Shown: in pieces, positions 24,589 through 49,246 of the stretch | Layout of the letters: every line of letters begins with the position of its first letter | Numbering within the stretch: the first letter of the stretch is position 1 | Source of the DNA: Podarcis muralis | Lineage: Eukaryota | Length of the DNA: 64,000 nucleotides | NCBI RefSeq assembly: GCF_964188315.1 | Contig: NC_135655.1 | Coordinates: 41,292,001 to 41,356,000 of the forward strand | Direction: 5' to 3' | Notes under the pieces: model-generated | Database searches by the model: none | What the model was told of the DNA's origin: nothing | Seen by the model: the letters and a program-made list of their open reading frames with translations, nothing else | Made by a program: the position numbers and the translations under genes

Positions 24589-24718
24589 NNNNNNNNNNNN
24601 NNNNNNNNNNNNNNNNNNNNNNNNNNNNNNNNNNNNNNNNNNNNNNNNNNNNNNNNNNNNNNNNNNNNNNNNNNNNNNNNNNNNNNNNNNNNNNNNNNNN
24701 NNNNNNNNNNNNNNNNNN
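24589..24718. other. Assembly gap (130 N)
   Basis: Run of N. Confidence 0.99.
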
Positions 24719-26755: not shown

Positions 26756-27011
26756 NNNNNNNNNNNNNNNNNNNNNNNNNNNNNNNNNNNNNNNNNNNNN
26801 NNNNNNNNNNNNNNNNNNNNNNNNNNNNNNNNNNNNNNNNNNNNNNNNNNNNNNNNNNNNNNNNNNNNNNNNNNNNNNNNNNNNNNNNNNNNNNNNNNNN
26901 NNNNNNNNNNNNNNNNNNNNNNNNNNNNNNNNNNNNNNNNNNNNNNNNNNNNNNNNNNNNNNNNNNNNNNNNNNNNNNNNNNNNNNNNNNNNNNNNNNNN
27001 NNNNNNNNNNN
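26756..27011. other. Assembly gap (256 N)
   Basis: Run of N. Confidence 0.99.
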
Positions 27012-43281: not shown

Positions 43282-43348
43282 TGTTGTTGTTGTTTAGTTG
43301 TTTAGTCATGTCCGACTCTTCGTGACCCCATGGACCAGAGCATGCCAG
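43282..43348 (-). mobile_element. BovB (RTE) 3' tail fragment
   Basis: (TGT)n-TTAGT..GTCCGACTCTTCGTGACCCCATGGACCAGAGCA, matching 48314-48380. Confidence 0.8.
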
Positions 43349-46775: not shown

Positions 46776-48313
46776 CATTAGTTGCTCCAGCCACTTTTGC
46801 ATCTGGCTCTGCTCACCTCTCTCTTGTGACCCTCAGGAGATGGAATGAGCTCCCCTTGGACTCACACTTAGCTGGGAGCTGGTTAAAACACAATGATGCT
46901 TCCCACTAGACATGGGCTGGATTGTTATCTAGCATTATTTTCAGTCACAGATCTTGGTCATAAGGAAAAATAGTGGGGTGGGGGAGGAGAACAGAGGAAG
47001 GTTTAGTGCCTCTTCTGCTGCCCACTAAATCACCCTGCCTATGTTGCCCAACCCAAGGTTAACGTTGTCAAATTTGGGATATATGGCTCAGGCAATTCTT
47101 AAGCCGTTCTGGACTCAGGTAGTTCAGGACTTTGTGTATCAGGGTAGGGTATAGATAAATAAATAATGTCAATCCTAATTTTTTGGGGGGTACTTAGATT
47201 ACAGGCCTCATTGAATGCCTAGTAACAAAAAACTGCCCCCAACTCTTGGAATTCTTGGTGATATATTTGACACTGGAATAAAATGGCTACCAATATTCCT
47301 AATTGTACACAAAATTATATCCACAGAATTCGATATCCATAGTATTTTTGTCCATAATCTTTTTTATTACTTTCACTCTAAATGTACTCATAATTGAATG
47401 AAAAGGTGCCAGTCAACCAAAGATTTAAAGAGAAGTGGGAAATGGTGTATGGACTGGCTATACATAGGCTCTTTGTAACTTTAGCCACTATAACATAAGC
47501 AGCCATGTGTGTCTGGCAAAAGGGTAAGGGTAAGTGAAAGAATACAATGAAGTGTTAAATTAGCCTGTATGGGGTTAGTAAGGACAGAGGATAAATTTTA
47601 TTTAAAGAAAGTAACATTGTACCTCATGCCAAACTGAGGTAATTTCCTTCCCCTTTCTTTATTTCCTAGGTTCCCAGATTTACAATTTTAATGGCGCTTG
47701 CCAGAGCTCACCTGAAGAAAGCATTATTCAAATGAAATCTTAAGAAAATATTTTTGTACAGGGCCTAGACCCATAAAGAAATACTACTGTATGCTGACAC
47801 CCCCCCCCCCCGTATAATTATACTACTAATTGCATCCATAAATAGCCCAGTGTTGCTGTAGTGCAGAGTGAAGATTCTGGGACCATTAAACACTCCATAG
47901 GCAGTTCTTTAAAGAAAAAGATTTACAACTTTGCTACTTACTATTACTCAGAATAGGTGGCAGGGGCAGGGGCGGCGGGGGTATTCATGCAGCCATTTTG
48001 TGTAGGAAAGTACGTTTTCTGAATGCCCCAAATACGGTAAATAAACTTTTACAATTTGCAAAGAAGAGAAAATCCCACCACTGTCCACTGCTAAAGATGT
48101 GAGGACCCATCCTTTACATTCATGGCTCAGTGGTTCAGTGTTCCCTCCCATTGGCCATGCTGAGAGACTTGTAGTGCAAGTCTGTATATGCCTCCTCACA
48201 AAGTAAGCATCATTGAGTTCAGCGGAATTTACTCTCCCAGGTAAGTGGGTACAGGAATGCAGGTTGAGGCTATGCTTGTACACATTATGTATTTTATTTT
48301 ATTTGCAATATTT

Positions 48314-48755
48314 GTTGTTGTTGTTTAGTCGTTTAGTTGTGTCCGACTCTTTGTGACCCCATGGACCAGAGCACACCAGGCACTTCTGTCTTCCACTGCC
48401 TCCCGCAGTTTGGTCAAACTCATGCTGGTAGCTTTGAGAACACTGCCCAACCATCTCGTCCTCTGCCGTCCCCTTCTCCTTGTGCCCTCCATCTTTCTCA
48501 ACATCAGGGTCTTTTCCAGGGAGTCTTGCCTGGAAGACACCCCCTTCATGGATCACTCCCCTTCATGGATCACTGCCTTGCCGTGGCGAAGGGGCTTGAA
48601 TAACTCAGAGAAGCTATGAACTATGCTGAGCAGGGCACCCAAGATGGACAGGTCATAGTGGAGAGTTTTGACCAAACGTGATCCACCTGGAGCAGGAACT
48701 GGCAAGCCACTCCAGTATCCCTGCCAAGAAAACTCCATGGACAAAGACAACAGGC
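48314..48755. mobile_element. BovB (RTE) rearranged insertion: 3' end on minus strand (48314-48527) joined to 5'-region segment on plus strand (48528-48755)
   Basis: Minus-strand ORF SLEKTLMLRKMEGTRRRGRQRTRWL...AWCALVHGVTKSRTQLND plus (CAA)n tail. The plus segment matches my recollection of the BovB 5' region. 13-bp TSD ATTTGCAATATTT (48301-48313, 48756-48768). Confidence 0.85.
48558..48684 (+). ncRNA. Predicted HDV-like self-cleaving ribozyme
   Basis: P1 CCCCTTC/GAAGGGG, J1/2 AT, P2 GGATCAC/GTGATCC, P3 GCC/GGC around L3 TTGCCGT, long P4 and J4/2 CCAAA, in HDV nested-pseudoknot order. Confidence 0.6.
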
Positions 48756-49246
48756 ATTTGCAATATTTACAAGATGATAAATATGAAACAATTTCATAGT
48801 AGTATACAGCATCAAAGTGAAATGAAATAAAACAAATAACATGCAGTACCTGAAAATGACCAACATAAATGCTGCCAGAGGAAAAACTCTGAAAAGGTCT
48901 GCAAAAATGGAAAGGTTGTTAGGTATCTGGTGAAAAGCACAGTGCATTGTTGCCTGCTTAATTTCTATGGAAAGTGTGTTCCACATGACCATTGATGCAG
49001 CGGGACTTGCTTTCAAGTAAATATATAGGAAACATGTATGTGGTGGTGAAAAGGATATTGGTATCGTCAGTCTGGCAGCTTAGTTCTATGGGTGAATTTG
49101 CCTTACTTGCCTTGCCCAGGATTTATTGAACTCCTTCTCTTCCTTTGTTCTCCTTCCTTGGTTTACTTCATGCCCCACTACAGCTGTGGGGCAGGAACAA
49201 CAAGCTGCCTTGGATACAAGGGTTAGACTAACAATAAGACCAAAAG

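Follow-up and report, generated by a model that had tools for sequence, protein, structure and literature searches.

A candidate hepatitis delta virus-like ribozyme fold at the 5' terminus of a lizard BovB retrotransposon

A 442-bp insertion in the genome of the lizard Podarcis muralis carries the 5'-terminal segment of a BovB retrotransposon, and the first ~127 nt of that segment can be paired in the order and with the spacing of a hepatitis delta virus (HDV) ribozyme. The insertion lies within a stretch of 64,000 nt (NCBI RefSeq assembly GCF_964188315.1, contig NC_135655.1, positions 41,292,001 to 41,356,000 of the forward strand), which we refer to as the window and whose first letter is position 1 in all coordinates below. 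The fold begins on the base at which ~3,000 genomic copies of the element begin, and one base pair of its helix P2 changes in a compensatory manner between BovB lineages. Judging from sequence comparison, we put the probability at about one in two that the first ~127 nt of squamate BovB RNA are an HDV-like ribozyme of the type found in trypanosomatid L1Tc elements, with a C+1/G37 pair at the base of helix P1 and a single-pair P1.1, and able to cleave. The name BovB is our own assignment, taken from the characteristic 3' end and from a preliminary description of this DNA; no tool output named BovB. BovB is the textbook example of a long interspersed nuclear element (LINE) spread by horizontal transfer among squamates, ruminants and other animals.

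The candidate fold

The helices P1 to P4 proposed in the preliminary description are all present, with perfect Watson-Crick pairing throughout. P1 is formed by CCCCTTC (48558-64) and GAAGGGG (48588-94), with 7/7 pairs. P2 is formed by GGATCAC (48567-73) and GTGATCC (48678-84), again with 7/7 pairs, or with 8 bp when T48566/A48685 is counted. P3 pairs GCC (48575-77) with GGC (48585-87) and closes the 7-nt loop L3, TTGCCGT, which has the U at position 1 and the C-G near the 3' side that go with the reverse wobble of HDV ribozymes. P4 contains two helices, AACTC (48602-06)/GAGTT (48663-67) and CTATGA (48614-19)/TCATAG (48653-58). The junction J1/2 is AT, as had been described, and the earlier statement that HDV itself has J1/2 AU and P3 GCC/GGC agrees with the printed sequence of the HDV genomic ribozyme. 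P1 crosses P2, P3 is nested between them and P4 follows the 3' strand of P1 (P1'), giving the nested double pseudoknot in both order and spacing.

To judge how often such an arrangement arises by chance, we used a strict descriptor that demands HDV topology, Watson-Crick pairs only, 7 bp in P1, 3 bp in P3 and at least 7 bp in P2. There was one match in 128 kb (both strands of the window), at 48558, compared with ~0.1 per 64-kb strand in shuffled sequence. When the 133-nt segment was shuffled with its dinucleotide composition retained, none of 20,000 shuffles had the strict motif starting at nt 1-3. Looser versions, with G.U pairs or one mismatch allowed, are common: one strand of the window has 33 such starts and the other 54, and 4% of shuffles had the motif. 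The weight therefore rests on the perfect pairings and on their location. With these, the fold is a real observation and unlikely to be due to chance.

Among the 4,227 Rfam models run on the 146-nt stretch 48550-48695, the best was RF02682 (HDV ribozyme, F. prausnitzii). Its match starts at 48558 and places P1 and P3 in the same register as above. We treat this hit as a lead and not as a match; its score is considered below.

The family-wide 5' boundary

Raw whole-genome shotgun (WGS) reads at ~1x from two runs were mapped on 48500-48800. Depth was ~3,000 over 48566-48752, ~10-50 just to the left of 48558, and zero to the right of 48764. The collapse on the left falls at 48557-48560, with 374, 647 and 345 reads breaking at 48557, 48558 and 48560, respectively (run X35). 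Consensus agreement among these left loose ends was only 0.35, as they run into unrelated A/T-rich flanks, and on the other side 1,294 reads run past 48756 into a common sequence with ATGACGCTGGAAGATGAGCCC, the BovB body. The genome thus contains ~3,000 copies that share a first base, 48558, where P1 begins and where the proposed cleavage site lies. An additional 17-mer that precedes this base in the window copy is no family feature, since depth at 48541-48557 is ~50 compared with ~3,000 in the segment.

At every core position, the window copy agrees with the family majority. It departs from the majority at P4 positions 48620, 48627 and 48629 and, downstream, at 48700, and it does not have the extra C after 48635 that is present in 42% of reads. 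L3 position 4 (48581) is C/T polymorphic within the lizard family (22%). Reads showed two variants across 48588-48594: G>A at 48588, present in 14% and due to CpG decay, and G>C at 48593, which is rare (~0.5% of DNA reads). Within J4/2, C>T changes occur in 16% of copies at 48673 and in 19% at 48677.

Insertion architecture

The insertion (48314-48755) is flanked by a perfect 13-bp direct repeat (48301-48313 / 48756-48768), a target-site duplication. It has the hallmarks of a twin-priming-type 5' inversion: a single target-site duplication, the end of the open reading frame (ORF) and the tail on the minus strand, the 5' segment on the plus strand, and a junction that is single-copy. The window copy is thus a dead-on-arrival, 'ends-only' insertion of BovB and not a working element. 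The preliminary description had located the ribozyme at the 5' end of a BovB element; the segment is indeed the true 5' terminus of the family, but at this locus it is an inverted fragment in a minus-strand 442-bp insertion.

A search with the C-terminus of the ORF gave 58,737 protein relatives, the closest of which are 75-83% identical and end in ...HGVTKSRTRLND; at the DNA level, the BovB 3' end is 89-90% identical to copies L001 and L002. The top matches were all short fragments, on contigs too short to reach the 5' end.

At the inversion junction (48541-48574), the start of the BovB RNA is present as two tandem 17-nt copies with no base between them. The gapless repeat suggests that the reverse transcriptase ran off the RNA's 5' end twice at the same nucleotide, by re-copying of the template. 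An added G, of the kind associated with capped templates, is absent at this junction.

Comparison with other BovB lineages

All comparisons were made with natural copies and read counts, with no element consensus built. The mammalian copies are host-derived DNA in metagenome assemblies: L006 came from a pattern scan, and L028 and the others from protein look-ups. Pattern scans of viral and of bacterial/archaeal contigs produced chance matches only, and the metagenome scan produced one useful copy, L006. The comparison comprises three complete 5' ends; later look-ups produced more long-leader copies and, repeatedly, one 5'-truncated locus, but no other complete end of the ancestral type. Pfam gave nothing significant for the short pieces.

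In the old copies L006 and L028, which share 78-79% identity with the lizard segment, homology starts at the same CCCC and is preceded by unrelated flanks. The alignment of L006 begins at nt 1 with 79% identity, and the copy extends into a coding piece that has 7,692 relatives; both 5' ends continue into the BovB coding region. These alignments indicate that the 5' terminus of BovB is nucleotide-exact across the deep split between the lizard and L006/L028. The 5'-truncated copies L025-L027, L029, L030 and L037-L041 are one BovB insertion that starts inside L3 and has the same flank in many metagenome samples; it is an orthologous or fixed host locus and was counted as one observation.

A second, long-leader mammalian type is represented by L017/18, L020-22, L024, L032 and L033. 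It keeps ATGGAYCAC-AGCCTTGTC and is then without the 18 nt that in the lizard make up P3', P1' and J1/4. In place of the lizard CCCCTTC there is a different, longer leader, which contains a GATCAC-ATG-GAYCAC duplication. This type appears to resemble cattle BovB. Between -900 and +200, no HDV-like motif common to the long-leader copies was found.

P2 was tabulated by anchoring on the ATGGAYCAC and GTGRTCCA motifs, as MAFFT misaligned the two leader types. The pair 48570:48681 is T-A in the lizard and L006, T.G in L028, L032 and L033, and C-G in L018, L020, L021, L024 and L035. The remaining seven P2 pairs are kept in the 10 copies, bar scattered decay. P2 therefore behaves like a real helix, with a stepwise compensatory series across lineages at this one pair. 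P4 gave no covariation among the three complete 5' ends, with conservation or single-copy decay mismatches only. P1 and P3 show the same pattern, which from three ends counts neither for nor against these helices.

Variation between lineages falls at L3 position 4 (C/T), J4/2 position 2 (C/T/A) and spacer nt 17 (T/G/A), with T at 48581 and A at 48673 in the mammalian copies. These positions also differ between HDV and the RF02682 consensus, or lie in a P2-P3 spacer that HDV does not have. C48672 and the two As of the C-N-A-A pattern are constant in every copy that retains the region, the exception being the internally deleted L035. In the mammalian copy L035 (85-135) the P2 strands GGACCAC and ATGGTCC are only ~13 nt apart; everything from P3 to J4/2 is deleted and a CCCTCC-type 5' end is kept. 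The preliminary description had given J4/2 as C-C-A-A-A. This run is present (as C-C-A-A-A-C, 48672-77), although its second C is not conserved; because C48672 is constant and 48673 varies, C48672, rather than 48673, is the likely catalytic base, within the C-N-A-A context.

RNA reads

Two stranded RNA-seq runs (X23 and X24) gave 285 and 368 reads on the stretch. Most of the RNA reads that extend into the flank trace to one copy, which is expressed, mutated and has a single flank. In both runs this dominant copy appears in one read direction, with upstream flank TGATTTTTATCTGCTGTCTACTCTGGGAAG and with variants at 48579, 48587, 48593 and elsewhere. Presumably it lies inside a well-expressed host transcript, and it is possibly transcribed antisense, if the library is of the deoxyuridine triphosphate (dUTP) type. 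In the other read direction, RNA depth relative to DNA drops ~3.5-fold towards 48558. This would fit RNAs that start at 48558, and would do so equally for cleavage and for initiation.

A sizeable share of the RNA reads have the 5' segment joined directly to the BovB 3' end (...GTGCTCTGGTC), from 48756 on. These reads represent a bipartite, non-autonomous BovB derivative that is expressed in the lizard.

Proposed mechanism and its alternatives

In the mechanism that we favour, BovB copies would be transcribed within longer host transcripts. The RNA would fold through P1-P4 and cut itself just 5' of C48558, with C48672 in J4/2 the likely general acid, and cleavage would leave a 5'-OH RNA beginning at the first base of the element. 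This RNA could then serve as the template for target-primed reverse transcription. As the template would have been cut at its first base, new copies would all begin at the same nucleotide. For the insertion in the window, an event of the twin-priming type may have primed a second cDNA inside the RNA at ~198, so that this part came to lie inverted with respect to the last ~230 nt of the element. The reverse transcriptase would have run to the first base of the RNA and re-copied the first 17 nt, and the product would then have been joined to the other cDNA.

Several observations weigh against ribozyme activity. Three of these concern the core. The +1 G.U wobble at the base of P1, which marks only the classical subgroup of HDV-like ribozymes, is missing, as C48558 pairs with G48594 and C1-G37 thus replaces G1.U37. 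A two-pair P1.1 is also missing: G48580:C48595 can pair, T48579/T48596 cannot. Finally, two extra nucleotides, A48676 and C48677, separate C-N-A-A from the 3' strand of P2 (P2'), opposite the single T48574. The minimum free energy (MFE) is ordinary for the whole segment (z = -0.5) and for P4 (z = +0.37), and both values are uninformative. Rfam reported no ribozyme family at the gathering threshold in the whole window, and none at E <= 10 on 801 nt. The RF02682 hit scored 15 bits where the gathering threshold is 44, and its E value was 0.92 in a search as short as 146 nt; the Rfam models leave P2 unscored and penalise a long P4. Among the three complete 5' ends, P1 and P3 had no compensatory change, the differences in L006 and L028 all being mismatches. 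Nor is the fold universal, as the long-leader type demonstrates that BovB can do without the P1'/P3' arrangement. In the RNA-seq data, there was no pile-up of read starts at 48558, at a sense depth of ~9-20 reads that put the threshold of the tool out of reach, and loose ends into the flank at 48557-48560 in X23 amounted to 74 reads compared with a mean depth of ~64.

The preliminary description had itself cautioned that the pyrimidine at +1 and the poor P1.1 might mean a dead copy. Both traits are real, but they are not disqualifying, as active ribozymes of the L1Tc clade have them too. Its broader proposal, that squamate BovB may process its own 5' end, draws strength from the fold at the 5' boundary, from the P2 series (T-A, T.G, C-G) and from an HDV ribozyme model ranking first in the same register; it gains nothing from P1 and P3, where covariation was also sought and not found, from the Rfam score, which is far below threshold, or from RNA 5' ends, none of which were found at 48558.

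In a bolder reading, the ancestral BovB leader would have been an active ribozyme of the L1Tc type. One mammalian lineage might then have replaced it, losing P3'/P1' in the 18-nt deletion and acquiring a new, longer leader; the hairpin closed by P2 would have been retained there to serve another function. We offer this history tentatively and with less than even confidence.

The alternative that survives best, unlikely as we judge it, is that the segment is a non-catalytic structured leader. P2 would close a long hairpin with P4 inside, and this hairpin would bind an element protein, act as an internal promoter or control translation. The 5' end would arise by transcription initiation at C48558, in a pyrimidine tract resembling TCT or terminal oligopyrimidine (TOP) starts, and P1 and P3 would be incidental or have another role. 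Such a leader is consistent with covariation in P2 only, with the keeping of P2 in the type that lost P1'/P3', and with the presence of P2 in pseudoknot-free MFE and centroid folds; the lack of an RNA start pile-up and the sub-threshold Rfam score point the same way. Moreover, in L1Tc the same 77 nt serve as promoter as well as ribozyme, and transcription starts where the ribozyme cleaves (PMC3185411), so that a defined start alone does not imply cleavage. Less easily explained are the perfect 7-bp P1 right after the 3-bp P3 at exact HDV spacing, seen in 0/20,000 shuffles, and the report that RTE elements are without promoters of their own (PMC6765202). A C start beneath random upstream flanks in thousands of copies would also be unusual. 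RNA polymerases II and III usually initiate at a purine.

We consider it improbable that the segment is a relic, i.e. an ancestral RTE HDV-like fold left in the leader that now cleaves too slowly to matter, in an element that relies on something else. The departures from the classical core (C1-G37, the one-pair P1.1 and the lengthened P2/J4-2 junction) could be read in this way, as could the loss of the module in the long-leader mammalian type, in which the element survived, and the plentiful RNA reads that span the junction. However, ~3,000 copies retain the core of the family majority and vary only at tolerant positions, the same 'defects' occur in L1Tc-type ribozymes that are active, and most of the junction-spanning reads stem from a single mutated copy, possibly from the antisense strand of that copy. 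A chance resemblance drawn from a very large scan is very improbable: although ~250,000 windows were scanned and loose motifs are common, at 33-54 per 64 kb, the strict motif is rare, its position coincides with a 5' terminus that was defined independently, in a clade known for such ribozymes, and it shares spacing and sequence with HDV, has an HDV ribozyme as its top Rfam family and shows covariation in P2.

If BovB RNA does cleave itself at this site, the activity would account for the shared starting base of ~3,000 copies and of copies in distant hosts, and would explain why the 5' end is kept in non-autonomous derivatives. It would free BovB from the need for a host-compatible promoter: whatever the host, the 5' end would be exact to the nucleotide and independent of a promoter. 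Lizard transcripts would then contain thousands of potential RNA cleavage sites, and the C+1 variant of the HDV fold, documented to date in trypanosomatids, would extend to vertebrates.

Features of the locus

The coordinates of the insertion and of the elements of the candidate fold are collected in Table 1. No further copies of the 5' segment were found in the 64-kb window. A fragment of 66 nt at 43283-43348 shares 91% identity with the 3' tail region of BovB and comes from another truncated BovB or a BovB-tailed SINE (short interspersed nuclear element). Antisense to the 5' segment, the minus strand of 48556-48753 is open for 66 codons (…MEFSWQGYWSGLPVPAPGG…). The frame resembles a peptide that is often seen in cattle Bov-A-derived predictions; as a gene it was rejected, being without protein relatives in the search. 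Runs of N, which are assembly gaps or masked stretches, occupy 24589-24718 and 26756-27011.

Table 1. Features of the BovB insertion and of the candidate ribozyme fold (window coordinates)
Feature	Position	Strand	Basis or remark
Left target-site duplication copy, ATTTGCAATATTT	48301..48313	.	Perfect direct repeat of 48756-48768
BovB 3' end: ORF terminus ...DSLEKTLML...HGVTKSRTQLND, stop, then AAC-type tail at 48314	48314..48540	-	Translation
Extra copy of the first 17 nt of BovB RNA (CCCCTTCATGGATCACT) at the inversion junction	48541..48557	+	Exact tandem repeat of 48558-74
BovB 5'-terminal segment, RNA positions ~1-198, inverted relative to the 3' end	48558..48755	+	WGS depth, boundary, homology
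P1 5' strand; predicted cleavage site immediately 5' of C48558	48558..48564	+	7/7 pairing; same columns paired by RF02682
P2 5' strand, TGGATCAC, after J1/2 (A48565, plus T48566 if P2 is 7 bp)	48566..48573	+	8 bp with 48678-85
P3 GCC/GGC around L3 TTGCCGT; L3 U at position 1 and C-G at 5-6, HDV-like	48575..48587	+	
P1 3' strand GAAGGGG, then C48595 and T48596	48588..48596	+	C48595:G48580 a possible one-pair P1.1
P4, a long imperfect hairpin (AACTC/GAGTT, CTATGA/TCATAG)	48602..48667	+	
J4/2 C-C-A-A-A-C; C48672 the conserved candidate catalytic cytosine, C-N-A-A pattern	48672..48677	+	
P2 3' strand, GTGATCCA	48678..48685	+	Pairs with 48566-73
Right target-site duplication copy	48756..48768	.	Repeat of 48301-48313

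Comparison with known HDV-like ribozymes and retrotransposons

The layout of the first 37 nt is identical to that of the HDV genomic ribozyme: a 7-nt P1, J1/2 AU, a 7-nt P2, P3 GCC/GGC, and P1' at nt 31-37. In L3, the U at position 1 and the C-G at 5-6 are shared with both HDV and RF02682 (HDV TCCTCGC(T); RF02682 UCUaCGU; BovB TTGCCGT), and J4/2 follows the same C-N-A-A pattern (C-G-A-A in HDV, C-U-A-A in the RF02682 consensus). The BovB candidate differs in having C1-G37 in place of G1.U37, in having U,G and not C,C at L3 positions 2-3, which leaves one P1.1 pair of reversed polarity, and in its much longer P4.

The closest parallel is the ribozyme of L1Tc (L1TcRz/Pr77), from the trypanosomatid L1Tc/ingi elements. 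This RNA cleaves in vitro 5' of its C1, and has G37 and a single-pair P1.1 (PMC3185411). Several relatives also begin at C1, and the authors who describe them state that the original genome-wide searches relied on too restrictive a descriptor (PMC4035085). Like the BovB candidate, L1TcRz forms the first nucleotides of a non-LTR (long terminal repeat) retrotransposon with many insertion sites, pairs a +1 C with G37 at a C/G-rich P1 base, has a single-pair P1.1, and places P3' and P1' at nt 28-37 and a C-N-A-A in J4/2; its 5' module, too, is kept in non-autonomous derivatives. In contrast, L1TcRz is 77 nt long with a short P4, whereas P4 of the BovB candidate is ~70-80 nt; the host clade is Ingi and not RTE, with no sequence homology; and the 1x2-nt irregularity between P2 and J4/2 is particular to BovB. 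Activity is proven for L1TcRz and is a prediction for the BovB candidate.

The joined 5' and 3' architecture of the copies in the lizard RNA reads is that of Bov-A2 (PMC5786205). The window insertion differs in having its 5' piece inverted, which points to an accident of the twin-priming type.

Our literature search found no report linking BovB/Bov-B to an HDV-like ribozyme. Within the RTE clade, reviews state that the elements carry HDV-like ribozymes and are without their own promoters (PMC6765202; PMC5786205), and the passages of PMC5786205, PMC3774820 and PMC6765202 that cite Ruminski et al. 2011 place such ribozymes at RTE-clade 5' ends. The Rfam models of the mosquito drz-Agam ribozymes gave no match to the BovB segment. 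The BovB candidate belongs to the same LINE clade, has the same 5'-terminal position and would have the same proposed role, the release of promoterless elements from co-transcripts. It is plausible that it would join the known HDV-like ribozymes of the RTE clade.

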